A stretch of DNA of 64,000 bases from Lepidodermella squamata (taxonomy: Eukaryota; Animalia; Gastrotricha): NCBI GenBank assembly GCA_047495785.1, contig JBLDXI010000011.1:434001-498000 (forward strand). The letters are read 5' to 3'. Position numbers and translations under genes: made by a program. Positions 2,076 through 39,855 of this stretch are shown in pieces (position 1 is the stretch's first letter; each line of letters begins with the position of its first letter). Below the pieces are notes generated by a model. That model did no database searches, had not been told where the DNA came from, and saw only the letters and a program-made list of their open reading frames with translations.

Positions 2076-3954
2076 ATGCGATCATCGTTTTTCATCCTAA
2101 TGTTGTTCGGCATTGTAATAAAAGCTTTAGCAACAGCTGAGTACGATGAACTGAGCCTTATCCATAATTTATATCGCGAATCATGCCCCATGGCGTTCTA
2201 CCAATGGCTGCCTCACTATTTCAAAGGCAGTAACGAAACGCAGAGGTTTGACTTAGTCCTCAACTTGAAAACGGCCGTCGACATACGCGATATCGACCGC
2301 CGCTTATCCCTCTCGGCTGAAGTGACCGCCAACTGGCCGTGGCCGTGCGACTCAAATGCTTTAAACAAGAAGCTGGCAGCCGCCAATATCACTGGCATCG
2401 ATGCGCTTCGAGCTGATGGCTTCCAAATGAGTGCTTCCTTAGACGAAGTCTGGCGTCCGAGTGTGTATCACAGAAATGCAGCCTCCTCTCCTGGGGTCAT
2501 AATGGAGTAAGCAATTTTGTTTAGTGATTAGCCGCAAATTATTTCGCCTAGTCGATTTCCTATAAGTAATAAATGGTCCTTCTAAGAACGTAAAAATAAA
2601 AAGAAATTGCGTAATACATGCAGCTTCAAGCTGAATAACAACTTCACAGCTCAACAGAGAGAAAGTCGGCGTTAGGAGGTTCATAAATACTCCAATTTTT
2701 AAGCGATGAAGCATGCGGCTCTCGGGCCACCGGGCTAAGTCTGCCAGTCTTCGACCAGCCTACAAACAACGCCCAACCGGGTCTGTAAATCCAGCGACCC
2801 ATGCCCAATGCTCCTAGTGCAATGAACCAAGATCCTTTCAATGGGGTTCCGAATTCGCAGTTAATTTTCCGCTTGAAAATGGTTTCTAGTGAAGTGATAG
2901 ATACAAAAAAATAAGACTTGCGCTAAAACCTATAACTCATCATAAACCTAAGCTCCACCCTAACCAAACCGTAACGTTAACCATAACCCGACCCCTCCTA
3001 ACCTGGACACCTAGCCCTTACTCCTTACCCCAACCATTGATAATCGATTTGTTGAAAAACGCATGTTTATAGGTTACAGGAGTCCGTATAGGAGGTAAGG
3101 AGGAAAACGACTCCTTCGAAAATCTTCGAAAAAGTTCCCACTTATAATTCCTTAAAATTTGGGATCAGAAGTGCTGAATTTACCCCCTGGATCAAGTTGG
3201 ACCACTGCAACATTTTGCATGAAACGATGTTGGATAGGTTTTTAATTTAAGCATACAAATTACGTATGAAAGAGCACTTTGAAATTTTTTTTTCGCAACA
3301 AATAAGATAAGGCCAGATAACAGATAATTATTTCCAACCCGTTAATTATTAAATAACCGCTTCTGGAACCCTTTCTAAGAACGAATACACCGACCATCGA
3401 CCCTACAAATTATTACGTTACTGAAATTTTTGAGCTTTTTTAATTAAGCTGCCGACTTCAACAATATTTGGGCTTTCGAGAAACACAATTATACAAATAA
3501 AGGCGACTCGCTGTTTGTATACTTGTCATTCAAACGCAAGTCTGGTTTCGTGATCCAGCAAATCATCGCGCCCTGTTACATTCTGGCTGTGCTTCAGATT
3601 CTTGGCCTGCTGATGCCTGCGAAAGCGCCTGACCGGCCTCTCTTCAGCATCACAGTACTACTCGCGTTCTTCGTCATTCTTGGCATGACGTTCAAAGCAA
3701 TTCCTCAATCGCCAGATCCTGTTTACCTGGCAATTTTGATCGAGACAAAAATTGGCATCGGGGCAATGGTTACTTTGTACAGCTTAGTAACAATCCGCTT
3801 TGCAAAGAGGCAGATTTCGAAGCATATCCTTTTCCAGATATTTAATTTCTATTATTTTACAATCATTAAATTGCTGGACTTGATGCCGATTGTTGCTGTA
3901 TTAGTATTCTACAGCATTGTTGATGGAGTTCTTTTCCGTAAGATGCTAGAATAA
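2076..3954 (+). pseudogene. Divergent pLGIC subunit paralog 1, probably disrupted (Cys-loop-coding segment not found)
   Basis: Exon 1 is 2076-2506 (signal peptide, SCP, WPWPC, VWRP; same phase-2 GA|gtaag donor as the paralogs). Homology resumes at ~3448 (IWAF...FKRK, M1-M4). No C...FPFD...C segment seen between, and the AG at 3447-3448 is not phase-compatible. Confidence 0.65.
2920..3036. repeat. Degenerate (CCCTAA)n telomere-like tract
   Basis: Run of imperfect CCTAA/CCCTAA/CCATAA hexamers inside pLGIC paralog 1. Confidence 0.6.
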
Positions 3955-6273: not shown

Positions 6274-8540
6274 ATGTATTCAATCGTTTTACTTTGCTTG
6301 ATTGGTCTCAGTGGTTCAGCTACTGCCACGTGGGTCCGGCGGGAGAGCCTTGAGCTCTTTGCGGTAATGGACGCGAAAAATGGTGTTAACGACTTGTCGG
6401 GCAAGCAGGCGATCAGCTCGAGCAACGATGCGGTGTTGAATTCTTACTACAGTGGACCTTTCAACGAGCCGCAGTCAAGCTATAGCGTCAAATCGAGTTA
6501 CCGGGCGATCGTTTACTACAACACCACGAAGAACACTTACAGAAGCTTCACATACACGATGTATTACCACGCTGATGCATTTGGAGATTCCGGTTTATTC
6601 TCAGAGCAGAACACGGCCTCGAGAAGACTCGGTCTCGTGCGGAAGGGAAATACGCTTGAAATTCACGGCTACAGCGGGACCGAAGACAAATCTTCGTCAA
6701 TCCGTGTTGAGAAAGCAGCAGATTTCTTCGCATTCTCCCGTTGGCATTTCATCGCTGTTACCTACGACGACGCGAATAACGAAGTAGCCCTCTACGATTC
6801 GGCTGGATTTTTGAAGAAGAGCTTTAAAAACTTCCACATCGACCCAAGTTCCTCGACGGGCTACGTTGTTGGCAACGCGAGGGATAACTATGGCTATTCG
6901 TACGGTCTGCAAATGAATGAAGCTATAGCTTGTGTGACAGTTCACAGCTCTGTTCTCAGCCAGTCTGAAATAAGCCAGCTGAGTGATGCCTGCAAATACA
7001 AGGGCGAGTACCCGCCAATGTGGCCTTCGACCGACAACTTGATGGCCGTGTGGCCTCTCACCAATAAACACAAGTTCAAAGATTTGGGAAAGAATGATCT
7101 TTCCTCTAGTTTTCCCTCTAATGGTAATTTCGTCGCAGTCAACGGTCCATTCGGAGGAGAGCTCAACGCAATCATGCCAACAAAGGACACGTACATGGAA
7201 ATGTTCAAAGTCTCGCATTCAGCTTTCAAAAGTAACAAGAGGTCTTTCACAGTCTCGTTTTTCCTTAGGCTAGATAAAAATGACTCGAAAGGAGGGATAT
7301 TTCAGTTCTTCGCTGAATTTGCTACTACCAACAAACTCCCACAAATTCACTACTCTGGTAATAAAGTTACCCTATCCGCTGGAGGAGTCGTTGCGGGTAC
7401 TACAATGCTAAGCTCGGATTCTGTCTGGAGTTTTATCAGCTTCAGCTACAACGGATATTCCCAGCTATTGACTGTCTACAACAAGCACGGTGTCGCTTAC
7501 AAGAGTACGAATATTGTTCCGATTGATATAAGCAATTATATTAATGGTGCGCAAGTTGGATATGCCGTCACAGCCGGTAGTTTGGCGCGTGGTGACAGCT
7601 TGTCCTGCTTATCGGTTTATTACTCCGACTTATCCTGGCCCGAGGTTCAGCGTCTGATCAGCGCTTGCCGGAACACACACGAAGTCACGATGCCTGGACA
7701 GCCCAAGTTGCCGCTGTCACCGATTCCAGCCCACACGTCGTCTTCAGCTCAAATCCCGCGAGCTGGCCAGTTTCCATGGCTCGGCGTCCTTAGCAACGTA
7801 TACGGAAATGAAACCATGTGCACTGTGTCGATTATCGACGAACTGTGGGTTCTAACCTCGGCTAAATGCGTGAATTCTAGCGATGCATACAAGCTTCCAG
7901 TTGTGACAGGTGTTCACGATTTCGCAGTCTCTTCTGTATACAAAAAGACGCATGCCATCTCCAAAATTATTCGATCCGGTAACTCAGAACGCGACATAGC
8001 TCTGCTGAAGTTGAAATCACCAATTGACATGACCTCAACTTATGTAAACGACATTTCGATCTACGGCAAGGATTCTAATAATGTCGACCAGAGTTCGTTC
8101 CAATTCATAGCCGGCTGGGGTAAAAATGGCCGATCCAGCCCGACAAGTAAAACCCTGCCAAGATTCGTTCATGGCGTGAAACTGGACGATGAGAACTGTG
8201 TGATTTCGTGGAAAGATGGCTTCGAGCCAGCGACTGACAGCTGCTTCCAATCTGCCACTCGAGATTTGAACGTGCCCTGCGACGGCGACGAAGGCTCCCC
8301 ACTCATGTTCCAATCACTTGGCAACGGAAAATCAGGAGACAGCCTCTTGCAGGTACTAGATACTAAAATGTATAATCTGCTTGTTTTATTGCTAAATGTT
8401 TGCAGTACGGGATTTATTTTGGCCGCGATGAAAAATGTTCAGCTAATAAGTTACCGCTGTTTGCAGACCTGGAGCCCTTTGGATCGTGGATTTCCGAAAA
8501 GTTGGTTTGTGACATAACCACAGACAATCCGAGCTGTTGA
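6274..8540 (+). CDS. Secreted protein with two LamG/ConA-like domains + catalytically inactive trypsin-like domain; exons 6274-8352, 8406-8540
   Basis: Signal peptide; two repeats with GPF..FT.S/T..W.F...Y..ACL/V..LS..E/V..L..AC; S1 protease motifs FPW, WVLTSAKC, DIALLKL, GWG, CDGDEGSP. A 53-nt GT-AG intron restores the protease C-terminus (YGIYFG..C..LFADLEPFGSWI). AATAAA at ~8649. Confidence 0.85.
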
Positions 8541-9763
8541 GGAATTGAATGCTATTTGACTTTCCAAAATTGATTTTTGTCCAATTATACATTCGACGAG
8601 GTGTGGTCTTTTAATTATTACGATTACTAATGATATCCACTTAAATCGAATAAAGAATAAGAACTGCAATTTCAAAAGATCTTCTGACCATGTAAAACGT
8701 TAAGCTCTCTTTTGCTTATTGAACAAGTATCAATTTCATGGCGGTAAACTCTCAAAATATTTCGGGACTAGTGCCCATGAAACTGGAAGGTTATTTGACG
8801 GGGAGGAGGGTTGGGAATGACCCAGCTCTTCGGCTGCGATAACGCTCCTCGCATAGAGAACATAGTGATTATATAAAATGAGGATAGTGCTGACCGGGCT
8901 ACCAGGTAAGCTACCACCTTGAGGTACCAAACTGCCGAATGAGGTCCTTTCAGCCTGCTGTTGAACGTTGAACAAGATGGCATCAAAATTCTGAGGTAAA
9001 ATTTCCGTTTGGTCATCGATGATTCAGCAGCAGTGCGACTTCCAGCTCGGCCGGGCCAGACAACAAAATGAGAATTTATCACACTGTTTTGTTAATTTTG
9101 GAAGGTTGTGGGGCGTGTTTTAGTGAAAATCCCAAAAGTTTCTCGCTTTGCTCGGTTTTTAGCCGAAATGACTCGTCATCCCTGGGTGCTCGGGGATCGA
9201 AGATCGCACCCTGGCGTTGCGTGAATACGCATCTCACCGAGCCTTGTGTTCACGACAATCGAGCAATCCAATAAGAATGATTAGCTTTATTTCAGCTTCC
9301 TTTCGCCTACACGTCGAAATATGTTGTCATCTGTACTATGATTAAGAGACTTCAATGAGTCCTAATTCCTAATAAAATGCGTTGATAACAATCCCTTTCA
9401 ATATGAGTCACTTTTCACTGGAAAAGATGGTGACTTATCAACAAAGATTACAAAAAAGATTGAACTCCACCCATGAGTAAACGCTAAATATAAAAGATTC
9501 CTTCTTGTTCACTTCAAGTCACTTTATTGCTGCTGAATTCACCCTCAAGTTCCCAAGTTCCGAATAATTATATTTCTACACCAATTCAACCTGGCTGACG
9601 TGCTATTTGCTGAAACCGGTAAGAATATGTTCACATTTGCTTAGTTCGATCTTGCGGATCAATGCATTTTCCAGGCTCTGTTGCCAACGGCGGAGCTGGC
9701 ATTGCCGATGATGTAAGAAAGCTGTTTCCCTCCAATTCGATTCATCATTCAGGTTTTCTATAG

Positions 9764-12156
9764 CTTGGGAGGATTCGCCGCAAAATCAATGTGACACCAC
9801 CCACTAAAAAATCTTATCTTTCCGCTCATGCCTGGAAAGACCAAGCTGGAACTATTAGAGAGGTAAAGTTTTTTACAGGTGACATATCATTTGCAAAATC
9901 TCTAATCTCTATAGTATCAACTGCTGAAATGTATCACTATTCCATTCATGGTTAAAGTCCTCGACGTGATGATCACAAATTCGTACACGGCTATTGTTAT
10001 TGAAAGCTACGGCTTTGGTAGGTGGCAAATATGTCTATTCATGACGCTGGAATAAAAGCAACTTCAGTGTTTCGACGTGTTCAAGATTGTATTCAAAATT
10101 AAGACCTCTTAAAAAAAACTAGAGGCTAGGAGTCTTTTCTCGCTATATTAGCGTTATACAGTTGGGCAAATGGCGGCAGTTGGTAGGGTCGAGCACAGCA
10201 TTGTCATTGAAAAGTGAAACGTGTTCCAATTCAATTTCCCAATTAAAGTTGCCAAGGGAATTGCGTGCTTTCGATGGACTTCGAACCCAGGGGCGTAACT
10301 AGCCGGGGAAAAATTGCCAAAAAATTAAAAGTTATGTTCTTCCTACTTCTCAAAATTGATGCCTTTCGAACTAGGGGGAGTGTAATGCTCACGGAAGGTA
10401 TAAAGCTTGATGTCAACCAGGCTTTTCTGTTAAAGTTTGAAGCATGTTTAGGGTATTTCTGAGGCAAAAATAAAATAAAAACCATTATCTGAAGCTTGCT
10501 TCGCTCGCGAGTGGCTGATTCCTGAGGGAATCTTGATTTAGTCTACGAAACTGGGGGGGGGGCAGCCTTGGGGCCAGCACATCTTTTCTACGTATTTGCG
10601 GCCCCGAATTTTTCAGACCAAAGGGTCCCCCTGTGGTACCCTGAGTGGATTTTTCCTGCTGGTGGGGCCGGTCGGTGCCCCCCCCCCCTTAGTTACGCCC
10701 CTGCCTTGGTCGTTCCTAGCATCGGCGTCATTCAGCGTGGCTGTCGAGTTGGGCCAGCTGGTACTGATGAGACCTTGGTTAGTCGCGAAAAACTCTGTTC
10801 TGATCTTCGCTTGTTGATTCCTCGGCTGAGTTGAGGTCAGAGAAAGATTTGTAATACCGGGAATGTAGTGGGCTTGGCGATTAGTATATTTACCAGGGAT
10901 TGTTAGCTCAGCATACATTTACGAGTCCTGTTTCCTGTTTCATGGGGCGGGTCGATTGTTCTGTTCTGATGTTGTGAACAGCTATCTTGAGATTTCGAGT
11001 CCGTTGTCGCTGAAGTTGGCGATAATTTCAGCATCTTCGTTTGAGTGCAACCTGACTAGAAGCCATAAATTCATATAATTACGCACAGGCTCGGATCTTT
11101 CATCTTATTTGGCTCAGTCAAAAGAACCTATCTCAGAAAATACGATTAGGACTTGGGCTGCTCAGCTTGTGATAGCAATTCGATCTCTTCATGATAACGA
11201 AATCGTTCACATGGATATACGACCCTCGGTATGAATTGATCTTAACCCCAAATCCTAACTGGCTCATGTTTTGCAGAACATTTTCCTCGCTGTTAATGGC
11301 ACTTTGAAACTCGGAGACTTTGGGCTGGCAAAACGGAAATGGTTAGCAATCAAACTTCGCACAAATAATGTCAACAGTTTTGCCATGTTACTATCATAGC
11401 TTGGAATCACTTCCGAATCTCGAACAGGGAGAAGCAGTTTACGTCGCCCCAGAGCTATGGAAAAAGCAAACGTTATCTGCGCAATCCGACATTTGGTCTT
11501 TGGGAGTTACATTATTCGAAATGGCTAGCTTAAAATCGCCAGCTTACACGGTAGAACTTGGTGAAACTTACGAAATGGCAATAGCAAGGTTCGCCGATTT
11601 AAATATTAGGAGCATGCTCTAAAGCATTCACATTTCTTATCATTCAGATGGAAGAATAGGTCTATACCTGAGATTTACAGTTCAGATCTTCGCAATCTAA
11701 TCCAATCTATGCTCAATGATGACCCTGCGTTGAGGCCGTCAGCTCATCAACTTCTTTCAAACGACATTTTAGCCGATAAAGTAAAAGAAGCCTTAGAGAT
11801 GAATGGTAAGTCATCAAACCATCATTTCCTGCCAATTAATTTGCGATTTGAAGGTTGCGACAAAGAAAGCGATTCTTTAGGTTGCTCAACGATTTCTTCT
11901 CTGCCAAAACAAGTCTCTTCAAGTTCAGTCGTTACCATGGTAAGCCATCAATTTCATCTGAAGTAGTGCAATCATCTACATTTTTGCTGCGGTTTCAGAA
12001 TAATAGGAATCAAGGACTAAGCGAGGAGAAAAGAATCGGGATTCAAAATCAATTGATCCTGATTTTACAGGCTCACCACCAAGCGTCACAGGAATACACC
12101 GCTTGCAGCAGCGATTACGCAACGCAAATAATGCGCATGCAGCGTGAGTGCACAAG
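9764..12156 (+). CDS. Multi-exon NEK-like Ser/Thr kinase continuing into a TAZ1-like helix (5' start and 3' junction unresolved)
   Basis: Phase-consistent exons 9764-9862, 9915-10017, 11089-11228, 11277-11341, 11400-11588, 11648-11805, 11854-11939, 11999-~12156. They give IRE|YQLLK, HMDIRPS|NIFL, LKLGDFGLAK, YVAPE, SDIWSLG, DPALRPSA, then EEKRIGIQNQLILILQAH. Confidence 0.8.
10288..10703. mobile_element. Intronic non-autonomous TIR element (hAT-like ends)
   Basis: TIR CAGGGGCGTAACTA / TAGTTACGCCCCTG; no matching TSD seen. Confidence 0.6.
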
Positions 12157-13767
12157 GTGGCGCACGCGCGCTTGACTTGCAACATAAATATTTTAAACGC
12201 AACCGTATTCAACCAAAGTGCAGCAGGAATTAACCAACCAGAAACACGATTTTTACAATATTGTAACAGGCATTTGAACCGCTTAAAAAACATTTTGGCT
12301 GGCAATATTTGCTGCCGCCATGGTTTTCATTAACGATTTTCAGACTTTTCATCAAAAAATTGCCGTCAGCTAAAAGCTCGCTGCGCTCGCATCTATGTAG
12401 TTTGGGCTTAATTTTGGTCAATGAAAAATATCCCCTCTCCCCTCCAACTATTAAGAGAAGTGTTTTGGTGCTTGGCACGCGACCGCTAAATTAAAAAATC
12501 CCCCAAAAAATCTTTAACCTTCGAAACTGCAACAAGTCATTTTACGGGACAGCCGGGGCGATGATGACAGCAGTGGTGCTGATGTAGTGGTTATTTATAT
12601 TGATGTCGAAATAAAGGTGGCCGTCGACGACACTGCCAAAATATATGTATAACACCAAATGTTACGGTTATTCCGGTGAGCTAGACCTTACACGTGGATG
12701 CCGCCTGCAATTATCAGCAATTACCCCTTCTTATTCTCGGTGTGATCGACCGGATCCGGAAATTCCACTCAACAGCTGTAGAGCTACTAAGAGTGGTTTC
12801 GTGTGGGTTTATCCACTTCAACCACTCGATGTCGACATTAAGTCCACCTTAATCCGTCTTTGTTTACACAGGGACGCAACATGCTGGGCGCACGGTCATT
12901 ACCTGTGATCGCAGCGGCGTGTCTTTGAAGTCTTGTAAGGCGGCCAAATTGCTCAATAATTAGATGAAGCGTGCCCGGTGCCCATCATTTCTGCCCGTTA
13001 CCGAATTTATGACTGGCATACTTTGGACGAGGTAGAATAAGGGTAGAATGGGCTCGTTTCAAATTTCCGGACCGATTACATTGGCCGGAAAATGACCGTC
13101 GTCGAAGTCTGGCAGTCCAAGGCGGCGCCCGCTTTGGCACCAGTGGAGGCGATGCCGTTGGACTTGCCACGAAGCTGCCGAAGCCCACATCGACTTTATC
13201 GACGGCGTCATGGGGGAGGGGTGGGGGTAGCTCTGCCGGTCGTAAACGGTAGCGTCGAGCCTGGCTGTGCTTGTAAGACGGGTTACAAGAAAGGCGGCCG
13301 GGCAGGCATTATCAGTACAACCACGTGACCCGAAAAAATGCAGGGGCAATAATTGCACTTTTTTGTTGAATCACTGTTGAAATATCACTGTTGCCATTCG
13401 CTCGGCTTCGAGATTGATTCGGGCCGCCGTCGGATTCCTACTAATGCAGCTAAGCTAATGACCGTTGTTGAAGGCAAGCGTAAGCGGGGTAGGCAGTCGA
13501 AGGCGGCGAACGCTCTCCAACGAACTCCGGCTCCGATTAAGGTGGCGCCCTTGGTGTTTGCCGAAATTTTTAGAAATTTCGACTGAGTTTGTCTTATTAT
13601 TGTTGAAAATGATATTTCTAGGAAATAAATGGCTGTGCTGCGCTCCGGTTAATTTGTGTTGCACTTGGGTGAAATCATGTTGCGCGCTGTGTAAATAATG
13701 ATGCGCGTGTTACGCTTATTTATTTCCTGCTGCACTTTGGTATATCGTGTTACGCTGTGGTTTTCAG

Positions 13768-14757
13768 CGGATTTTACATGCTCATAAGTGTACAAAACGA
13801 CATGCTATGGCAAAGGCGATTGCAGCAAGTGTTGCTGGTACTGCGACAAACCCGACTTTTCCGAACTGTAGAGTCGCTTTTTGTCAACGAATGAAAGAGG
13901 TGATAAGCCACGTGAGAGGCTGCAGCGATGATAAATCTTGTCTGTGTAAGTTTGAATTTTAAATTTATTTTCGAATGCTCAATGTTGAATCGATTGTAGA
14001 CAAAAGCTGCCTGTCTACGCGACAAATAATCAAGCATTGGCAGTCGTGCAATGACGAGGAGTGCCCCGTGTGTAAGGAAGTTAGGATGCTGAGTCTCTTG
14101 TCGAAGCCAGTTTTCGACTCGAAAGTGTTGCGAAAAACAACGAGTGATGCTATCCCTGTGCATCATTCCGTTATTCCCATTCAAGCTAATATTGCATCAA
14201 CCTGGCAGAAAGAATTCGGCACTGCAGCTAGACAGGCTGCGATCGATAAATTTATCGAAGAATTAAGGTTGAGCAGCGGTGGCTACAGCGACCTGGAGGC
14301 TTTGCGCAAGTTTGCCGTGCAAACCGAAGCTGAAATTTACACCCGGGCTGATACATCTGAGCGGTACTTCTTTTTACTGGCTGAGAAGCTGTACACTGCT
14401 TCGAAGGAACTTTTGCATACTGGAGGAAATAGTAAGTGTTGATGACATTCTCTTAACACCTTTTCAAGTTTTGTTTTTCATCAGTGGACAAAGACAATGC
14501 AAATGATGAGAAGCATCAATGCCCGATTTGTTACTTGGACATCGTAAAACTCGGTTGCAGTTCGAGACGATTGATTTGTGGGCATGGTAAAATTAAAGTC
14601 GATGATAGAATTACCTCTTCCTTATATTGATGGTTTTCTAGTTTACCATATGGCCTGCATCAACCGCTGGCTCAGAGAGAGTGACAGTTGCCCAACCTGC
14701 AGAGCTATTGTACAGTCGCGTTCAACAAGTACACAGCAGATAGCTACAAATGCTTGA
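13768..14757 (+). CDS. CBP/p300-type TAZ1 zinc finger + KIX domain + RING-H2 finger; exons 13768-13945, 14000-14431, 14485-14586, 14642-14757
   Basis: TAZ1: ILHAHKC..C..FCQRMKEVISHVRGC..KSC..C.STRQIIKHWQSC..CPVC. KIX: WQKE..FAVQTEAEIYTRA..YFFLLAEKLY..KEL. RING-H2: CPIC..LICGHVYHMACINRWL..SCPTCR. All three introns are GT-AG phase 1 and keep frame. Confidence 0.85.
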
Positions 14758-15687: not shown

Positions 15688-17054
15688 ATGATGTTCCTGT
15701 TCTTATACATGATTTTCGCGCTTTCAAATAGCGCCAATGGGGATCTGAGCTTTCAAGAATTAACTTCTATTGACGAAATATTCCGAAGTTCATGCCCACT
15801 TGCTCTGTACAAACGGCTGCCAAATCACTTCATCAGCAGCCACGGACCCATGAACGTAGAGCAAATCAGCATTCATATTGCAGCGCCTGTCGATATTCAC
15901 GACACCGAGAGCCAGCTATCAATTATGGCTTCGGTAGACGTAAAGTGGAGATGGCCGTGCGATTTGAACGCGTTTTGTAGCAACCTCGCTGCTGCTAAAA
16001 TTACCGAAACGAAGTGCGATGCGATGGCTAAATTAGGGTTATCAATTGATGCGTCACAGGAGGAAATTGCCGCCAAATATGCAGATGATCCATCATTCAA
16101 GCTTGATCACGAAGTATTAGCAAAATATGAGTTCTCACTCGATGAACCTATCGACGAAATTTGGACACCGATTATCTATCACAAGAATGCTGTCTCTAAT
16201 CCTAATGCCATTATGGAGTAAGTCTTGGAATTTCCTATTTTCTTTCTAGGACCTGTGGGGGAAAAGCTTCAAAAACTGCGGCTCATATTAAATTAAGTTT
16301 TAAGCCTAAAGCATAAGTTTTTTACAGGGCGGTGTCACAGTCGAAAGCTGAAGTCTTCATGTTTTCCGGCTATTCAACGTGGCATACTCGAGGAAAGTTG
16401 GAATCTCACTGCTTTGACAACTCGAAAATATCGCAATTTCCCTTCGATCACTTCGAGTGCGTCATTATCTTGCATGGAGATAATTTTGTTCTTCGTTCTT
16501 CTGACAAGCTTCACGTGCGAATGTACTTTGAGCCCGATGACGAAGTTGCCAACGTTTGGATATTCAAACGCTATTACAATGAGTCGTGCTCTCTTTACGA
16601 TTGCTTTGTAAAGTTGTCCTTCGAACGAAAGCCAAGTTTTATCATTCAGAAAGTCATCCTACCCTGCTACATCCTGGCCCTGCTTCAAATCCTAAGCCTG
16701 CTGATGCCTGCTCGAATGCCAGATCGGCCCGTTTATAGCATCACAGTCCTTCTGGCTTTCTTCGTCATTTTCAGTATGATTTTCGAGGCGATTCCGCAAA
16801 CATCAGAGCCTGTTTACCTGGCAATTTTAATCGAGACAAAGATAGGAATAGCAACGCTTGTTACCCTGTACACCCTGGTTACAATCCGTTTAGCAAAGCG
16901 ACGTTTGTTCAAACAACTGCTTGTGGACAAAAGTTGCATTTCGTTAACAGTCATCGATATCATCGACTGGATAGCAGCTATCATTGTAGTAGCCGTATCA
17001 TGCATTATCGATGGATTCCTTTTATTCAAAATGCTGAAAGGCAACGATTCTTAG
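15688..17054 (+). CDS. Divergent Cys-loop ligand-gated ion channel subunit (paralog 2); exons 15688-16217, 16328-17054
   Basis: Signal peptide, IWTP loop A, Cys-loop CFDNSKISQFPFDHFEC, pre-M1 RKP, four TM helices with M2 DRPVYSITVLL; phase-2 intron keeps frame. Confidence 0.9.
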
Positions 17055-17298
17055 AATGCTATAAAATATTATTAGAACACAGAAAATCGAAATTTAAAAT
17101 AAAGTAACTAAGAACTAAGATTTTCCGAGCATTAGTTGATGTTGCGGGGCTGATTTTTCTCATTATTTTTATCGCAACATGAAATAAATGACGCTGAATT
17201 AACTCTTTTGGATAATCGATAACCATAAAACGATCTTAAAATTTGCAAAACCCTTAAACGTTGGCTAAAATGTTGATCTGCAATATTAAATTGAGTGC

Positions 17299-17529
17299 TT
17301 CTCAAAACGGATATCTCCGTTGTTCACCAAATGTTGCATGCATATAGAACGCGAACTGCTCTTTCACGTGGTATAAGATTTGACTTGGGCAATTGCTGCT
17401 CAGTCTTGATCTCATCAAAATAAATGAAACCAACGGTTGGGTTGCCCACCTCTTATACCACGTGAAAGAGCAGTTCGCGTTCTATATGCATGCAACATTT
17501 GGTGAACAACGGAGATATCCTTTTGAGAA
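17299..17529. repeat. Near-perfect ~80-bp inverted repeat (foldback core of a non-autonomous DNA element)
   Basis: 17299-17378 is the reverse complement of 17451-17529, with a ~72-nt spacer. Confidence 0.85.
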
Positions 17530-18013
17530 ATTCAGCTTTGAATAAACATTGAGATTCTGAAATTTTAGCTTGAGTGTCATTTATTTATCTATGGAATCAC
17601 CCGTATCGTAAAATTGTATCATGCAGCTTCTGGTCGTGGCTTTTTCAAAGAAAACTATGTTGATTCGGATATCTAATCCTTGCCTGATCTCGGTAAATCA
17701 GTTTAGACATGAGATTAGTAAAGCGGGGTACCGAAGAGAAGGAATTACACAATTTTTTACAGTTCAGTTTAGTAAATGTTAGTCCCGCCAGTTCTTCAAC
17801 GTCAAAAAATGCTCTGTATTTTGTTTTTATTCGACCAATAATTCGATATTTCGACCGGATATCACGAACTGCCACGCTAGAGGCGTCGCAGAGCGCAGAA
17901 ATAATGGAAAAGTGCATGGCGAATGCGGATATTCAGGAACAACCCTGCAAATATTGTGAAACTCTCTATTTTATTTCGAAAAACGTTCACAGAAATTAGA
18001 GGCGCTTCAAACA

Positions 18014-19711
18014 ATGGAATTTCCACTGCTGGTTTACGTACTGGTTTCTTCACTGGCGTCTCTAATCCACGCAAATATGCGTTTCGATGAAGTTGATACG
18101 ATTCATCGAATATTCCGGCATTCCTGTCCATTCGCTCTGTACAAATGGCTGCCTAATTATCTTACAAAGAGCAGTGAAGATTCGAGTAAGCGAATTGACA
18201 TCAACGTCCAGATAGACGTGCGAGCGCCCGTTGATATCCAAGACACTAACCGAAGACTGTCACTTTTCAGTAATGTATACGTCTCATGGCAATGGCCGTG
18301 CGATTTTGAAGTGTTCCATCAGAATCTCGCAGCTGCGAACGTCACTGGCGGCGATTTGCAAGATTTCTTCATGGATACGTCCCTTGACGAAGTGTGGGGA
18401 CCAACCATCATGCACCATAATGCAGTTGCTAATTCTGCGGCTATAATGGAGTGAGTTGAAACCAGTTTTTCGATTTTGCGAACGCGACGAATTGTTAAAA
18501 CAGCCAAGGGTGGACTCGATTCTCAGACATATCCTGGGATTCTCAAGCGGGGTAAATTCCATGAGCGAACAATTTTTCGGACAGTATACGAAGTACAGGG
18601 GGAGTAAGGGTGCCGTACATAAGAGCTCGAGAGGTCCTGGCAAAAAAACTCGGAAACAAATCAAAGGGGACCCTTTTGGTCCAAAATACCTTCCACCCTA
18701 GGGATCAAGATTATGGTTCTAGGTATGAAAAACATTTGGTGGGGAAACTTGAAACCAACCGAATTTTATTCCGGCCCTGAATGTAAAAGTGATATCTTTT
18801 GTAGGACCTTGACGAAAAAAACGAAAACAGTTTCATTTTGTCTCAAAACTTAAACCTGAGGACTTCTTAGCTTTCCTTAGCAAACTTGTAATCGAAACTT
18901 GTCGCATTTGTCGATTGTTGTTGTATTATCAGTCAATAAAACGTCCCTTTTTGCCATGATTTGTGCATGAATCACTAATTACACACTGTAAATTTTCAGG
19001 TCTATAATGCGTTCGAACGTTCGAGTCAACATGTTTACCGGCGACTCTTGGTGGTCTAGTTCAGGCTTGTTGGAATCTCAATGCCCAGAAAACTCGAATA
19101 TCGCGCAATTTCCATTCGATAGCTTTGAATGTGACATTATTTACGCGATATTTTACGATGTCAGATTCTCATCTGCTCATGTGGTAACCGATTTCAAGCG
19201 AGGTGTCGGCGACGTTTGGACGTTGCAAGACTTCAATTATACTTACAGCGACGATATGTGCACTGTTCAGCTGTGCTTTCAGCGCAAGCCGGGTTTCATA
19301 ATCCAGCAAATCATCGTGCCCTGCTACATATTGGCTATTCTTCAGATTCTCGCCCTCATCATGCCAGCTAAAATGGCAGACCGGCCTGTTTACAGCATTA
19401 CAGTCCTTCTGTCGTATTTCGTCATTCTCAGCATGATCTTCGAGGCGATTCCACAGTCTTCAGAGCCCATTTACCTGGTTATTTTGATCGAAGTGAAAAT
19501 CACAATTGGAGCAGTAATTACATTGTACACCCTCATAACACTACGCTTGGCGAAGCGCGGCCTATCGAAGAAAAAAGTGACGAAGATTTTCTCCAATTCT
19601 ATCGCTGTCATCGATTTAATGGACATGGTTGCAGCGATCATTGTCGTTGCTTTATCAGCCATAATTGACGGAGTACTATTCAGAAAAATGCTTCAGGGAG
19701 ATAATCAGTGA
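18014..19711 (+). CDS. Divergent Cys-loop ligand-gated ion channel subunit (paralog 3); exons 18014-18450, 19000-19711
   Basis: Signal peptide, VWGP, Cys-loop CPENSNIAQFPFDSFEC, RKP, M1-M4; same intron position and phase as paralog 2. Confidence 0.9.
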
Positions 19712-20775: not shown

Positions 20776-22017
20776 TCAACGAGATAGCCCTCGTAACCTC
20801 AGCAGAATGGCTGCTGCATTTTTACCATTGAAAATTGCTCGATCAAGTGCTGTTTGATCATTCACGTCCTTCATATCTGAATTCGCACCTTTGTCAAGCA
20901 ACAGCTTAATACAGTTCACGTGCCCATAGCTGGCGGCCCACATCAAAGCCGTCGTACCAAAGTTATCCTTATCATCGATTGCACCGCCGCGGTTGAGTAG
21001 TAGCCGCACTGCATTCACGCTCCCATTCGCGGCCGCAATCATCAACGCCGTCGTGCCGTTGACATCTTTCGCCTCGATGGAAGCGTTTCGGTCGAGCAGC
21101 AGTCGCATTGCATCGACGAACCCACCCGAGGCCGCGAACATAAGCGCTGTCGAGCCATCGCTATCCTTCGCCTCGATTGCAGCGCCGCGGTCCAGTAGCA
21201 GTCGAACTACATCAGTCTTCCCTATCGCAGCTGCCAACATCGAAGCAATCGAGCCGTCCTTATCTTTCGCCTCTATTGAAGCGTTTCGGCCAAGCAGGGG
21301 CAGAACTACCTCGACACTCGCATTCTTAACCGCAAACATCAACGGCGTGGTTCCTTTGAAATCCTTTGCCTCGATAGCAGCATTACGCTCGAGCAGTAGT
21401 TGAATTGCCCCAGCCTGTCCGTAATTAGCCGCCCACATCAACCCAGTCCTGCCATAGTTATCTCTAGCCTCGATAACCGCATTTCGGTCGAGCAGCAGGC
21501 GAAGTGTTCCGACCTGCCCGTACCTGGCTGCCCACATAAGCGCAGTGCTGCCGAAGTTATCCTTAGCCTCAATTGCAGCATTCCGATCAAGGAGCAGCTG
21601 AGCAGCTCCGACCTGCCCATACCTAGCCGCCCACATCAATCCTGTGCCGCCGTAGCTATCTCTGGCGTCAATCGAAGCGTTTCGATCGAGCAGCAGTCGT
21701 ATTGCATCGACATTCCCATTTCCAGCAGCTAGAATCAACGCTGTCCTGTTGACCTGATTCTCCCTGGCATTTACATCAGCGCCACGGTCTAACAAAAGCC
21801 TCGCAATTTCCAGCCGCTGGCCCTGTTGCCGTGACGTATCGGCACACAGCATTACGCGGTGAAGCAGCGTGGCGTTTCTGTTTCTCCATTCACATGCGAC
21901 GTAAGCGTTAGGATCGCGCCAGTTGGGGTCGAAATTGCCGCCAGAGGCTTCGTCTATCTCGGCTACGAGCTGCCGCACTTTCACTGCATCTGCAGTCTCA
22001 CCTGTCACATTCCACAT
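20776..22017 (-). CDS. Ankyrin repeat protein (~11 repeats); an upstream exon is possible
   Basis: Tandem 33-aa G.TALM.AA..G..D..RLLLDR.A.IEAKD units; AG directly before the ATG may be a splice acceptor. Confidence 0.9.
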   Translation of the reverse strand: MWNVTGETADAVKVRQLVAEIDEASGGNFDPNWRDPNAYVACEWRNRNATLLHRVMLCADTSRQQGQRLEIARLLLDRGADVNARENQVNRTALILAAGNGNVDAIRLLLDRNASIDARDSYGGTGLMWAARYGQVGAAQLLLDRNAAIEAKDNFGSTALMWAARYGQVGTLRLLLDRNAVIEARDNYGRTGLMWAANYGQAGAIQLLLERNAAIEAKDFKGTTPLMFAVKNASVEVVLPLLGRNASIEAKDKDGSIASMLAAAIGKTDVVRLLLDRGAAIEAKDSDGSTALMFAASGGFVDAMRLLLDRNASIEAKDVNGTTALMIAAANGSVNAVRLLLNRGGAIDDKDNFGTTALMWAASYGHVNCIKLLLDKGANSDMKDVNDQTALDRAIFNGKNAAAILLRLRGLSR

Positions 22018-24198: not shown

Positions 24199-27126
24199 AT
24201 GTCCCGACACCGCGCATCTATTTTGATACTCTTGCTAATTTCCGGAATCTCGCCAAATCCTGGTCCCGACGCTGCTATTCCACAGGTGCCACCCACGCTT
24301 GATCATTGTGATCTGGTTTCATCCCGGTTTGCTCCGGATTTTCACGCATGTGTCAGCGCTAACCTGAATGGTCTGCTAACCCTTGACAAATTAGATGAGC
24401 TAGCAGAATTCGCGGAGGTTATTCGGCCGATGGCAATCATGTTGTGCGAAACTAAAATTCCCGATGGGTGTACCCCGAAACACGTCGAAGATCAATTCGA
24501 ACCTGATATGAGTCTTCAAGATCCTTATTTCGGGTATGATTGCTTTTGGAAGGGCCGGAATAGGTCAAAAGCAGGCGGAGTTGGCCTGCTTGTTTACAAG
24601 AAATACGCGGTGGTCCTGGACCGGGTGATACCTTCAAAAACGGTTGAGAACCAACAATGTGTCCTGCAAATGCCATCTGGAAAACGCCTAGCTCTAACAG
24701 CGATTTACCGCCGACCGAGCAACCCCGACAGCTTCACAGCATCAGAGGCTGAGGAGATCGAATGTTTCTTGATCGGGTGCATGTCAGTTGAGGCCGATTA
24801 TCACGTAATCTCCGGCGACTTCAACTGGAATCTTCGCAATTATGGTGTATTGAAATCAATGAAAGAAGTATTCCAAGATTTCGGCCTGCAGCCTGCCTAC
24901 GAAAATCTAGTTACACGCCCTGCATCAGGGAGATGTCTCGATCATTTCTGGTCAAACGTTACAGAATCGAAAGTCGCAACTGCTGGAACAATCGTTGGCC
25001 TCAGCGATCATTATGGGACGACAATGGTCATTGAAGATGAGAATAATTCGAAACCTGTCAGCGAAAACGTGCGAGTTTTTCGTGATGTTCGAAATATTGA
25101 TTCTGATCAACTGAATCGTCGGCTCAAGTCCAAGCTCGAAAATATCGACGAAGACCTGCCCTATACTTGCGAAGCGTACTGGCAACTTGTCAAAACCTGC
25201 CTCCTCGACACTGTTAACGAAGTGGCTCCGATGATTGTCAAAAAGCCCGGCCGAAAAAATCGGGTTCGCAAATCTGACATCAACCCATCACTATCGCGAC
25301 GCGAACGAAAACGCTTGCGAAGAAAGATGCGGCGAGCCAAGTACCAGAAACAAGTCAAAGAGGCTGGACGAGGCCCTCGCAAGCTGTGGCGGGTCATCAG
25401 TGACTTCAGGCCAAAGAAGAAAACTCAGGGATCATTTCAGGGATTGGACAAAGATAAGTCGCTGCTGAAGGCAAATGAGTTCAATTCATTCTTTGCGCAA
25501 GCCGGTTTTAAAGTTGCTCAAGCCCTATCGAAAAGCCTGAACTTCGTGAGACTGCGCACTGGCTACAACAAGTTTGATTTTCGATCGATATCGCGTGCTG
25601 AGGTTGAGGCAGCTATTGACAAGCTGTCGTACAAATCGACAACTGGGTACGATGGAGTGCCGGAATGCGTCATCAAAATGGCCAAGTCTACTTTAACTCC
25701 TTGTTTGCTTAAACTTTTTAACTTAGCGATTGCCGAACGAACCTTTATATCGGACTGGAAGGCATCAATTGTAACTCCGCTTCACAAATCCGGCAGCAGA
25801 TTGGAGACAGCCAATTATCGGCCGATTTCAATCACGTCACCAGTTGCTCGGACGTTCGAACGGTGTCTGGCGTTTCAGCTTAAAGGTCACTTGGCTAACT
25901 TCTGGTCTTCTGCGCAACACGGTTTCCGAGAGAAACACTCGACGGACACGTGCGTTGCCGAATTTACCGAAAACTGGCGGCGGTCCATGTACGAAGGCAA
26001 GGTTGTGGGCGCTGTCTCAATCGATTTGTCAAAGGCCTTTGATACGCTGAATCACGACGCAATCATAGAGTCATTCAAAAGTGCTGGTTTATCACCTGAT
26101 GCCCTTCTATTACTTCGAAACTACCTCTCAGATCGCCGTCAAGCAACCAGGATCAATAACGAATTGTCTTCGTTTGAGAGCGTTGGTCTGGGCGTACCTC
26201 AGGGGTCCGTTCTCGGACCGCTAATGTTCACCGTTTATGTGAATGAATTGTCGACGGTTGTAGAGCGATGTGGCTTGAAACAATATGCTGACGATATTAC
26301 TATTTATTTTGCAAGTAGGAATGTGAACGAACTTCGCGCTGTCTTGCAACTTGAGATGAATCGAGTTTGCCACTGGCTTCAAGGCAACTCGTTGGCTGTT
26401 AATGGCAAAAAGTCACAGTTTATGTTGCTGAAGTGCGCTAAGCCTGATGCTCCGAATTTCTCGATCACCATCGGCGACACTGTTGTTAGGCCTGCAAACG
26501 TCATGATAACTCTTGGGTTTACAATCGACTGCAAGCTCACGTTCAATCGTCACATCAAAGGTGCAAAAAGCAAAGCAAGGAAAGGTTTGTTCGCCCTGAA
26601 ACTCGCAGCTAAGTTCATCGACCGAAAGACAGCAGTAATGATGGCCAACGGTCTCGTGTTCAGTCATCTCAACTACGGCGACTTGACTCTTGGACAAGCT
26701 GCGCCGACTACGTTGGATCGGCTTCAGACAACTCAAGACCGCGCTGTCCGAATTATCTGTGGCGCTCATCCTCTGGCCGACGCAGCGCCTCTTCGTCATC
26801 GCCTCGGCTGGGTCGACGTAAATCAAAAGCACGCTATTCATCTGGCTACCTTTCTATGGAACTGTCTACACCAACAAGCACCCACTGTCATGCAGTCATG
26901 GTTCCAGCTGAACGATCCCTCGAACTATGAAACTCGCCACTTTGAACCGATGTTTAAACCAACGTACTCAAAGGTTCGCGGCATGCTGAGCATGAGCTAC
27001 CGAGGCCCTGATCTATGGAACCAGCTCCCGGTCAATGTCCATCAATCTGAAACAGCTCAGACCTGCAGGGAAGCCACCTACTCGCACTTCTACGAAAAAA
27101 ATGCTGCAAAATTGAAATTAAAATGA
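24199..27126 (+). CDS. APE endonuclease-reverse transcriptase of LINE, with N-terminal 2A-like motif
   Basis: EN: NLNGL, LCET, GGVG, IYRRP, GDFN, LDH, SDH. RT: NYRPIS, QHGFR, DLSKAFD, GVPQGSVLGP, YADD. N-terminal LLLISGISPNPGP. Confidence 0.93.
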   Translation: MSRHRASILILLLISGISPNPGPDAAIPQVPPTLDHCDLVSSRFAPDFHACVSANLNGLLTLDKLDELAEFAEVIRPMAIMLCETKIPDGCTPKHVEDQFEPDMSLQDPYFGYDCFWKGRNRSKAGGVGLLVYKKYAVVLDRVIPSKTVENQQCVLQMPSGKRLALTAIYRRPSNPDSFTASEAEEIECFLIGCMSVEADYHVISGDFNWNLRNYGVLKSMKEVFQDFGLQPAYENLVTRPASGRCLDHFWSNVTESKVATAGTIVGLSDHYGTTMVIEDENNSKPVSENVRVFRDVRNIDSDQLNRRLKSKLENIDEDLPYTCEAYWQLVKTCLLDTVNEVAPMIVKKPGRKNRVRKSDINPSLSRRERKRLRRKMRRAKYQKQVKEAGRGPRKLWRVISDFRPKKKTQGSFQGLDKDKSLLKANEFNSFFAQAGFKVAQALSKSLNFVRLRTGYNKFDFRSISRAEVEAAIDKLSYKSTTGYDGVPECVIKMAKSTLTPCLLKLFNLAIAERTFISDWKASIVTPLHKSGSRLETANYRPISITSPVARTFERCLAFQLKGHLANFWSSAQHGFREKHSTDTCVAEFTENWRRSMYEGKVVGAVSIDLSKAFDTLNHDAIIESFKSAGLSPDALLLLRNYLSDRRQATRINNELSSFESVGLGVPQGSVLGPLMFTVYVNELSTVVERCGLKQYADDITIYFASRNVNELRAVLQLEMNRVCHWLQGNSLAVNGKKSQFMLLKCAKPDAPNFSITIGDTVVRPANVMITLGFTIDCKLTFNRHIKGAKSKARKGLFALKLAAKFIDRKTAVMMANGLVFSHLNYGDLTLGQAAPTTLDRLQTTQDRAVRIICGAHPLADAAPLRHRLGWVDVNQKHAIHLATFLWNCLHQQAPTVMQSWFQLNDPSNYETRHFEPMFKPTYSKVRGMLSMSYRGPDLWNQLPVNVHQSETAQTCREATYSHFYEKNAAKLKLK

Positions 27127-32052: not shown

Positions 32053-32830
32053 CTATAATAATTGCCGAATTTCGTCGGATTGCGCTAAATCCCTCGCAAT
32101 TTCGCCGTCGCTATTTTTCGATTCCAAAAAATCGCGATCGACCTCGGCCAACAATTTCACAAATTCGATTCGATTTTCTAGAACAGCGACGAAAAGCGCC
32201 GTTGACCCGGCGGTGATTTTTCGATTAACGCCCCGTGACGTCACGTAAAACGCGGATTTTGTCGATTTTTTGCGAAAATCACAGCCGTGACGAAGGAGAA
32301 GCCGGCCGAGCGTGACGTCACCGTGACGAGCGGCTAGAAACAACGCCGACCAGCCGTTTTCATCCGCCTGGTTAACATCGGCGTGATTCTGGAGTAGCAA
32401 ATCGACAACGTTATGCCGCCGGTTCAGTGAAGCGTAAAATAGCGGTGACCAACCGAAATTGTTTGTCCTATTGGGCGAGGCGCCCTTTTCCAGGAGAATC
32501 CGGGTGCTTTCGAGACAGCCGGATTTAGCCGAGGCGAACAGCGCCGACCAGCCGTCTTTTGACAGGGTGTCTACAGTAGCACCGCGTTGGATGAGTAATT
32601 TGACGAGGTTAGGGTGTCTCTGGGAAGCGGCGGCCATCAGCACGGTGTAGCCGGACTCGTCGGCGTAATTGACTAGGGCGCCCTGGTCGAGGAGTTTGCG
32701 AACTTCGGCGACAGATTGATTCGGGTGCCGGTCGAGTAGGATGAGTAGGTGCTGGCTGAGGACGAGCGGGTCCGGCTCGTTAAGCGACGCCGGCGGCACC
32801 AGGGCGCCGCGCAAATCAGGCGTGTCGTAA
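32053..32830 (-). CDS. Ankyrin repeat protein, last exon (5' exon(s) unresolved)
   Basis: ~6 ankyrin repeats (GYTVLMAAA, GWSALFAS, GWSPLFYAS, GWSALFLAA, GSTALFVA); AG acceptor at ~32831; candidate upstream donor CAG|GTGAGT at ~33412. Confidence 0.8.
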
Positions 32831-38726: not shown

Positions 38727-39855
38727 TCACGGAGTAACACAAGCATCAAAAATCAGGCCATAAGCCGGGTTGATGGCATAATATCTGAGAGTAACCGTGA
38801 AAAGCCCGCAGCACTCTGCGAAAGAGTTAGCGCTGTAGGTACTAGGCGGCTTGGTGGCCTAGAAGCGAAAAGAGACGATTGGAATTAGCAAACATTTCAG
38901 TCTAAAAGCTACCAATGCGGAGTCGACGGCAGTTAACGAGGATACTGCTGCGGTATAAGGAAAGCGGTAACATGATGATGCAGGGTCTCCATCAGATGTA
39001 AAAGCTGCTATTTTGTAGGGGTTGTCAGCGCTGAATGTGCCAATACACATCAGTACAGGCGGAGAGCCAGGAGCAATCTCGTATATCAGAGAATTAGCTC
39101 CCTTCGCCGCATTGCAACAAGCAGTAAAAGAGCTGAAAGTATTTGGCGAGGCGGGGGATGGCTGAAATGAATCAATCAGGTCTTTAAATCGCGGTTTACA
39201 TCAGTTAACGATTCTTACGGCTGTTCCATCTGTGAGAACCGAGTTGCATGCACCAGCATTCGCTGTGCAGAATGGGACATTAGATCTTGAGATCTTTGCA
39301 TCGCCCACCGTCTTGGTTACCACGCACAAATTGTAGGTGGGCTGATGAAAATTTGCAGATGATAAAGGTTTTCGAATATCGAATGAATAAACTTACAGGG
39401 CTAACAGGGCTCGCGCAAGATTGCCCACCCGGGCATTGCGTTGCCGCCTTATCGATGCAATTTTTCGCTGAAACATCGCAAATATTGGCGGCTGGCGTGC
39501 AGCTTTGCCCACCCGGGCATTGCGTACCCGCCTTGTCGATGCAATTTTTGGCTGAAACATCGCAAACATTGGCCGAAGGCGTGCAGGTTTTCGCTGCGGT
39601 GTCACAAGTGTTGGCGGCTACACTTTTACTCAGACAGCTGTTTGCTGTAGCATCACAGACGTTCGCCGATGCAACACAGGACGACCCAGAGTTGCAGGGG
39701 TTGGTCGTTGTATAACAGGCCTGGCCATTCGGGCAAGTTCCAGGCGAATCCGTGACCGTTGCCGATCTCGGGCATGGCGTTGTGCTCGCTGCAGGGCAGG
39801 CAGTGGCAGTGGCGAAAACAGCAGCAAGGAGCACGGCGAACACCGAGGTTTCCAT
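38727..39855 (-). CDS. Secreted Cys-rich repeat protein, copy A (4 exons)
   Basis: Signal peptide METSVFAVLLAAVFATATA; Cys repeats C..AAN.CD.SAKNCIDKA.TQCPGGQS; short introns lead to PTYNLC.., SSFTACC.., and last exon ATKPPSTYSANSFAECC..DACVTP*. Confidence 0.8.

Follow-up and report, generated by a model that had tools for sequence, protein, structure and literature searches.

Positions 9662 to 14757 of a 64,000-nucleotide stretch of the Lepidodermella squamata genome (assembly GCA_047495785.1, contig JBLDXI010000011.1, positions 434,001 to 498,000; the whole stretch is hereafter referred to as the window) hold exons encoding, in order, a kinase-like domain, a CBP-type TAZ1 zinc finger, a KIX domain and a RING-H2 finger. 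The locus raises the question of whether these parts belong to a single protein and, if so, why its two halves cannot be joined in frame. An earlier note, made from the sequence alone, had proposed a four-domain fusion and had itself pointed to the difficulty: the donors seen after the kinase exons, at 12143 and 12156, are in phase 1 and phase 2, respectively, while the acceptor at 13768 is in phase 0, such that either an extra exon is needed or the gene is broken. The phases were read correctly, and the mismatch can now be given a concrete cause, namely the insertion of a repeat that splits the TAZ1 exon. We consider it probable that the locus is a repeat-interrupted member of an expanded kinase-TAZ1-KIX-RING family, and that this copy was broken recently, making it a young pseudogene or, at best, a split gene.

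The interruption of the TAZ1 exon

The nine upstream exons (about 9662-12075) encode 355 amino acids ending in EEKRIGIQNQLILILQAH, after which 33 unrelated codons lead to a stop at 12173-12175. The four downstream exons, in turn, splice into a stop-free product of 275 amino acids whose junctions are all GT..AG and all phase-consistent; this product and the Pfam matches of its exons bear out the earlier claim that four exons join TAZ1, KIX and RING-H2. Alignment with related proteins demonstrates that each half matches one side of the same finger. Specifically, the upstream part aligns as far as ...LQAH, with 12022-12075, the TAZ1-like first helix recognized by the earlier note, aligning to helix 1 of every relative, and the downstream part picks up at ILHAHKC; in all six TAZ-KIX-RING relatives aligned, as well as in proteins from the rotifer Rotaria and in CBP-like sequences, helix 1 is contiguous with HA(H/N)KC.

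Between the two halves lie 1,694 bp bordered by a 15-nt direct repeat, GATTTTACA[G/T]GCTCA, present at 12061-12075 and 13770-13784 with 14 of 15 positions identical (family D6 of the repeat search). The direct repeat sits exactly where the upstream exon ceases, and the downstream exon begins, to resemble TAZ1. Two read runs, from which contigs were placed on 5,701 letters at an identity of at least 90%, bear on this interval: X1, which behaves as RNA because its depth is zero in the intron at 10018-11088 and in the 3' flank and because GT..AG joints are present, and X2, which is DNA-like. In X2 the insert has a depth of 204-361, compared with 55-76 in the single-copy flanks (4-6 times deeper), and a contig of depth 217 ends exactly at 13769. 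In X1 depth over the insert is 0.3-5, falling to near zero over 12174-13701. The AG at 13766-13767 that precedes the downstream TAZ1 exon belongs to the end of the insert. No Pfam domain was found in the eight open reading frames (ORFs) examined within the insert, no Rfam family, ribozymes included, matched it, no second copy exists within the window, and no exact 30-mer from it was found in the JGI metagenomes. The insert is presumably a mobile element, and its long duplication would suit a retroelement-type insertion.

What the exon looks like without the insert can be seen in the reads. In X1 as in X2, contigs of a paralogue link 12075 with about 13824 by way of 36 letters reading ...QAH-KCEKRDAIAKS..., one continuous TAZ1 exon, which amounts to an empty site. 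Helix 1 of this paralogue leads without a break into the remainder of TAZ1, which makes the four-domain design a real feature of the family. The fusion proposed by the earlier note is thus upheld for the family, in which the paralogue is continuous and the kinase is spliced to the helix-1 exon, and most likely fails for this particular copy.

The earlier suggestion that the gene is broken here is also consistent with an enumeration of all GT and GC donors in 12060-12172 and all AG acceptors in 13700-13795. No phase-0 GT donor exists in the former interval, and both usable acceptors (13768 and 13789) are in phase 0, leaving the halves with no in-frame GT-AG splice; only weak GC sites would fit, such as CAG/GCTCAC at 12070, and these were rejected. 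The extra exon that had been offered as the other solution, at about 12554-12617, in fact lies one base away at 12553-12616, and it does restore the frame: 11999-12156, 12553-12616 and the sequence from 13768 onward read through without a stop, and a good pyrimidine tract precedes the acceptor at 13768. Were the gene intact in this manner, the 1.7 kb would consist of two introns around the extra exon, with the donor at 12156, and would add about 55 residues to TAZ1 helix 1. Against this, 269 AG..GT combinations within the insert restore the frame equally well, X1 depth is 0.64 over 12556-12746 compared with 21-32 for near-identical exon contigs, and no such joint is present among those listed. 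In addition, helix 1 of the product would be disrupted before the first zinc ligand is reached, and the other introns of the gene measure 48-59 nt, apart from one of 1,071 nt. We therefore hold an intact gene to be highly improbable.

The stop at 12173-12175, which gives the upstream model an end of its own, and the existence elsewhere of kinase-less TAZ-KIX-RING genes would both suit a different origin, in which a kinase gene with a chance helix-1-like tail happens to precede a stand-alone TAZ-KIX-RING gene whose 5' exon lies in or beyond 12176-13767. Such an origin is made very unlikely by three observations. Firstly, the match to helix 1, over 18 residues, ends at the very point at which the downstream exon takes over, the two overlapping by 15 nt. 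Secondly, the paralogue holds both parts in one exon, in RNA as well as in DNA. Thirdly, 12176-13767 does not encode a start codon followed by helix 1, and the eight ORFs examined there hold no domain.

Under the preferred reading, that of an interrupted gene, the repeat would have entered the exon for TAZ1 helix alpha-1, duplicating 15 nt of its target; the kinase frame would run 33 codons into the insert and give a 355-amino-acid product with only the start of TAZ1, and the remainder, TAZ without helix 1, KIX and RING, would lack an in-frame splice link to anything upstream. In the downstream part no start codon precedes the first zinc ligands; with its first in-frame methionine lying after them, it could yield a KIX-RING product at most. 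Apart from the insert, all 13 exons and the splice sites flanking them are intact, and 14 of the 15 duplicated positions agree; the break therefore looks recent.

Several observations weigh against this reading. The insert has no terminal inverted repeats, no poly-A tail and no coding remnant, only asymmetric sub-terminal inverted repeats, and so falls into no transposon class. A 15-nt duplication in which one position differs may have come about in some other way. Of the two repeat ends the left is the less sharply defined, the contig covering the repeat in X2 beginning at 12103 and not at 12076. Given the 90% identity at which contigs were placed, the RNA joints may stem from paralogues and not from this copy. 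Lastly, X1 contigs match the KIX exon with 1 mismatch in 324 nt (14098-14421) and the TAZ exon with 0 in 128 nt, and are correctly spliced; either the KIX exon of this copy or that of an uninterrupted allele is transcribed, and the locus is therefore not silent.

The last of these points could also indicate that an uninterrupted four-domain allele exists at this site and is expressed in living animals, the insertion being an error of assembly or present on one haplotype only. Repeats commonly cause misjoins, the read runs bear two different organism labels, and at the two insert junctions the evidence is that of binned read depth. On the other side, 85% of the words sampled from the stretch occur in X2, whose depth runs on without a break through the bins of both junctions; a 15-nt duplication is the mark of a true insertion and not of a misjoin; and among the 15 of 29 joints listed, none in X2 is an empty-site joint with the flanks of this copy, the sole listed joint from 12075 to 13824 differing at about 6 of 36 letters and so belonging to a paralogue. 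We regard an artefactual or polymorphic insertion as unlikely, though a more serious contender than either of the alternatives above.

Domains and transcripts on either side of the insert

The exons, the insert and its flanking repeats are collected in Table 1. The 5' end of the gene model, at 9662, is uncertain: an alternative acceptor is present at 9674, and no joint from the first exon was seen in X1 despite coverage over 9500-10072.

Table 1. Coding exons, insert and direct repeats of the interrupted gene, in window coordinates.
Feature	Positions	Strand	Basis
Possible first coding exon	9662..9712	+	ATG at 9662, GTAAGA donor, frame; X1 depth ~11 over 9500-10072
Kinase-like N-lobe exon (LGRIRRKINV...AWK...TIRE)	9764..9862	+	Phase-0 AG and GT sites
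Kinase-like N-lobe and hinge exon (YQLLKCI...IVIESYGF)	9915..10017	+	Frame; X1 loose end
Kinase exon, catalytic loop HMDIRPS(N)	11089..11228	+	Pkinase profile 90-127, E 1.8e-6; X1 loose end
Kinase exon, DFG motif	11277..11341	+	Pkinase profile 128-147; joint 11341/11400 in 2 X1 contigs
Kinase C-lobe exon, APE and DIWSLG	11400..11588	+	Pkinase E 4.9e-9
Last kinase exon (subdomain XI) and linker start	11648..11805	+	Pkinase profile 229-261; X1 joint 11805/11854
Ser-rich linker exon	11854..11939	+	X1 joint 11939/11999; frame
5' part of split TAZ1 exon, helix alpha-1 EEKRIGIQNQLILILQAH	11999..12075	+	Alignment with relatives; paralogue
Left 15-nt direct repeat copy GATTTTACAGGCTCA, read as target-site duplication	12061..12075	.	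Repeat family D6
1,694-bp non-coding interspersed repeat within TAZ1 exon	12076..13769	.	Read depth, repeat search
Right 15-nt direct repeat copy GATTTTACATGCTCA	13770..13784	.	Repeat family D6
3' part of split TAZ1 exon, (R)ILHAHKC..., zinc site 1 and most of site 2	13768..13945	+	zf-TAZ
TAZ1 helix 4 (zinc site 3), 35-aa disordered linker, whole KIX	14000..14431	+	Pfam, structures, X1
RING-H2 first half (CPIC...CGH)	14485..14586	+	X1 joints 14431/14485, 14586/14642; RING-H2 pattern
RING-H2 second half (H..C...CPTC), short tail, stop codon	14642..14757	+	zf-rbx1, zf-RING_2

Pfam searches were run on single exons. In the upstream part, Pkinase (PF00069) matches in four exons (E 5e-9 to 6e-3) follow one another in order along profile positions 90-261, and the motifs HMDIRPSN (HxD...N), DFG and APE are all present. 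The glycine-rich loop is degenerate, with no GxGxxG anywhere in the kinase-like part, and the AWK of the exon at 9764-9862 provides a possible beta-3 lysine. None of the first three exons (9662-10017) is matched by Pfam when searched individually, those at 9764-9862 and 9915-10016 not even at E 10. Among solved structures, the exon at 11400-11588 ranks ULK4 (2.3e-6) above NEK7 (2.2e-5), and that at 11089-11228 matches ULK2 and ULK1 best, with no NEK among the matches listed. The kinase of the earlier note is borne out as kinase-like, while its NEK label is weak, the domain being no closer to NEK than to ULK. Given the missing glycine loop, an N-lobe without a Pfam match and modest ULK/NEK E-values, the data go only as far as a part that appears kinase-like, ULK/NEK-like and possibly inactive. 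ULK4 is itself a pseudokinase.

The introns of the gene measure 48-59 nt, with the exception of the 1,071 nt at 10018-11088. Within this intron, and accounting for its length, lies a MITE-like element (10288-10703) with internal G10/C10 tracts and 21-nt inverted repeats at its termini (CAGGGGCGTAACTAGCCGGGG / CCCCCCTTAGTTACGCCCCTG); its depth in the DNA-like run reaches up to 652, compared with about 55-60 in the flanks, and it is therefore a high-copy repeat.

In the downstream part, zf-TAZ (PF02135) matches 13768-13944 (E 5.9e-7) and the first portion of 14002-14430 (E 2.4e-4). This part contains three HCCC zinc sites spaced as in TAZ fingers, H-x3-C-x25-C-x4-C, H-x3-C-x5-C-x4-C and H-x3-C-x4-C-x2-C. 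That the finger is a TAZ1 rather than a TAZ2 is indicated by its five best solved-structure matches (7qgs, 1l3e, 1l8c, 1u2n and 1r8u), TAZ2 entries scoring lower. In this copy helix alpha-1 is not contiguous with the first zinc ligand (HAHKC from 13777); in the paralogue seen in the reads it is contiguous.

The exon at 14002-14430 also matches the KIX domain profiles (PF02172 / PF16987) KIX_2 (E 1.1e-7) and KIX (E 4.7e-4), and a model of its 143 amino acids forms a three-helix bundle (helices 74-91, 98-115 and 119-141) with a pLDDT of 85-97. The best Foldseek matches of this bundle are the KIX domains of CBP/p300, with a target TM of 0.70-0.80 and an rmsd of 1.9-3.3 Å. CBP AEKIYKIQKEL aligns with AEKLYTASKEL of the window, keeping the Tyr and Lys of IYKIQK, which we take to be CBP Y658 and K662, the residues that contact the CREB phosphoserine.

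The last exon (14644-14754) matches zf-rbx1 (E 4.4e-7) and zf-RING_2 (E 4.1e-6). The RING-H2 (PF13639 / PF12678), CPIC-x14-CGH-x2-H-x2-C-x10-CPTC, is a complete C3H2C3 at residues 216-257 of the downstream product, whose ORF ends 18 residues further on. In the Pfam searches of the exons, no bromodomain, histone acetyltransferase (HAT) core, ZZ or TAZ2 domain was found after KIX.

Transcripts support much of this structure. X1 contains the GT..AG joints 11341/11400, 11805/11854, 11939/11999, 13945/14000, 14431/14485 and 14586/14642, none of which is present in the DNA-like X2. Two more joints are backed by loose ends of X1 contigs: 11228/11277, where the loose end before 11276 shows the spliced form, and 10017/11089, where the final part of the exon at 9915-10017 is found, in a paralogous copy, in the loose end before 11088. 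In this copy or in closely similar ones, the kinase exons are thus joined to the exon of helix 1 in RNA, and expression and splicing hold for the KIX and RING exons too; the joining of the latter two in RNA (14431/14485), which the earlier note had made a test of its proposal, was seen in contigs that may derive from paralogues. With respect to the 48-nt intron at 11229-11276, one X1 contig keeps it, minus 8 nt, while splicing the next intron, and another has it spliced out, indicating either intron retention or a paralogue difference.

The X2 depth of the exons, which rises to about 1,000 at the helix-1 exon and is 380-420 at KIX, points to several close paralogues. Of 30 exon differences listed between this copy and close ones, 17 are synonymous and 13 non-synonymous, a ratio that can be taken as a crude sign of purifying selection in the family.

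Relatives, possible function and surroundings

A HMMER search of 1.84 billion representatives with the KIX exon as query returned 88 hits. Among these are three clusters of proteins of 305-320 amino acids (P0002, P0004 and P0014, joined by P0107) that contain TAZ, KIX and RING-H2 in that order, and with which residues 2-261 of the downstream product align end to end (E 1e-40 to 1e-58, 30-38% identity). In the few environmental metagenome assemblies from which they come, each is encoded by one unbroken ORF on an animal-like contig. No kinase was found near these genes, none of the 88 representative hits combines a kinase motif with a TAZ or KIX domain, and the JGI metagenomes yielded only CBP-like TAZ-KIX loci. 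Cys-loop receptor genes lie near both a metagenomic gene (L001 937-1218 and 11279-11923; L006 5937-6218) and the gene in the window, where they occupy 2076-3954 and 15688-19711. Shared synteny was nevertheless rejected, the receptors of the two lacking similarity at E 1e-4.

A maximum-likelihood tree built on the TAZ-KIX region groups the window's protein with each of the 11 RING-bearing proteins that it includes and with two cut-off relatives, in a split of 14 rows with 100/100 support that lies on a long branch apart from CBP-like fragments and from the short TAZ-KIX proteins of Rotaria (about 30% identity). Given this separate, long-branched split, the module is not a recent offshoot of the host CBP. 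The description of the gene as a "HAT-less CBP derivative" is accordingly loose. No paper was found on TAZ-KIX-RING, kinase-TAZ-KIX-RING or KIX-SOCS proteins, in agreement with the earlier statement that no described protein of this architecture was known; that statement needs qualification in that unnamed, kinase-less TAZ-KIX-RING proteins do occur in metagenomes. The architecture is a new combination of known domains, and the locus represents one member of a hitherto undescribed gene family of invertebrates, recently expanded and lineage-specific.

Intact members of the family would carry the kinase-like domain, a Ser-rich linker, TAZ1, KIX and RING-H2 in one protein, for which ligase activity, binding of activators and a role for the kinase are predicted. 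TAZ1 and KIX would grip short amphipathic activation domains of transcription factors, as in CBP/p300, and RING-H2 would recruit a ubiquitin-charged E2, such that bound activators or their neighbours are ubiquitinated. The protein would in this manner ubiquitinate activators or compete with the coactivator for them, and the kinase-like domain may generate, or respond to, the phosphorylated form favoured by KIX. We put forward only tentatively, as a possibility short of a probable one, that intact members are ligases aimed at activation domains, each a self-contained switch of kinase, reader and ligase in competition with the coactivator, with the kinase-like domain setting or gating the phosphate mark read by KIX, and that this copy represents family turnover by repeat insertion. 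If true, an animal would have evolved a ligase that identifies transcription factors through their activation domains, by which CBP/p300 are themselves recruited; such a ligase would be a parallel in nature to engineered degraders and a new means of silencing activators.

Irrespective of function, the frame problem has a concrete cause in the repeat insertion, and this copy is therefore unfit as a reference gene model or for expression constructs. The locus is a dated case of a gene dying, or being split, within a young family, and may show a route to shorter kinase-only and KIX-RING genes. What the window adds is the insertion event itself and the link to kinase-less metagenomic relatives.

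Several other features surround the gene. Two long ORFs with RVT_1 domains (24199-27126, E 3e-31, and 45783-47423, E 4e-35) are copies of non-LTR retrotransposons, the first of which, at 975 amino acids, looks complete, and an ORF at 44802-45392 with a DDE_Tnp_4 domain (E 7e-29) is a fragment of a Harbinger/PIF-type transposase. Three paralogous reverse-strand ORFs at 39280-39855, 50785-51378 and 56422-56805 encode secreted-looking, Cys-rich proteins with repeated units (CPGGQSCTPAANVCDVSAKNCIDKAATQ) and form a tandem family; the one of the three that was examined (50788-51378) has no Pfam match. A single ORF of 747 amino acids at 6274-8517 combines Laminin_G_3 (concanavalin-like) and trypsin domains, and has no homologue at E 1e-10 among proteins of similar length. 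Two intronless ORFs on the reverse strand complete the list: one of 413 amino acids (20776-22017) consists almost entirely of ankyrin repeats according to Pfam, and one of 270 amino acids (32053-32865) appears ankyrin-like by eye.

Comparison with known systems

The closest counterparts of the gene are the metagenomic TAZ-KIX-RING proteins, with which it shares the domain order and the helix-1 motif KRxGIxNQL.L.LHA.KC. In contrast to the window gene, which has introns and a kinase, these are encoded by intronless genes of another animal and have no kinase upstream.

With respect to the N-terminal module of CBP/p300, which provides the best solved matches for TAZ1 and KIX, all 12 zinc ligands of TAZ1 are kept, while a 13-residue insert separates helices 1 and 2. 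The bromodomain, HAT, ZZ, TAZ2 and IBiD of CBP/p300 have no place in the window protein, the RING of the latter is a canonical two-zinc RING-H2 where that of CBP is an atypical one-zinc form, and a long branch sets the window group apart from CBP-like sequences. The coactivator p300/CBP, for its part, ubiquitinates p53 (PMC12547938, citing Grossman 2003 and Shi 2009).

The best matches of the two largest kinase exons are ULK4, ULK1/2 and NEK7, which have HxD...N, DFG and APE in common with the kinase-like part. The E-values, obtained on short pieces, are only 2e-6 to 2e-5, no family stands out, and the kinase-like part departs from ULK and NEK in having HMD in place of HRD, no glycine-rich loop and an N-lobe that Pfam does not recognize.

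TAZ fingers are attached to a ubiquitin-ligase module in the BTB-TAZ (BT) proteins of plants as well, BTB-TAZ proteins being a subfamily of CUL3 substrate adaptors (PMC13075204). These contain a BTB adaptor instead of a RING and neither KIX nor kinase, and their origin is independent of that of the window family. In animals, a 'p300-like' protein of the fish Myripristis murdjan (XP_029933398.1; P0003) combines TAZ, three KIX domains and a SOCS box, a different ligase module; it is one of two fish proteins (with P0015) that join KIX domains to a SOCS box, and the one that adds a TAZ finger. A further protein (P0082) has three KIX domains followed by RING-IBR, an RBR module unlike the RING-H2 of the window. 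Both P0003, which falls on a different branch of the tree, and P0082 lack a kinase and are known from automatic annotation only, and no paper was found that joins KIX and the SOCS box in the sense of a docking ligase. As judged from these domain arrangements, the distribution suggests that the fusion of CBP-type docking domains to a ubiquitin-ligase module has arisen more than once.

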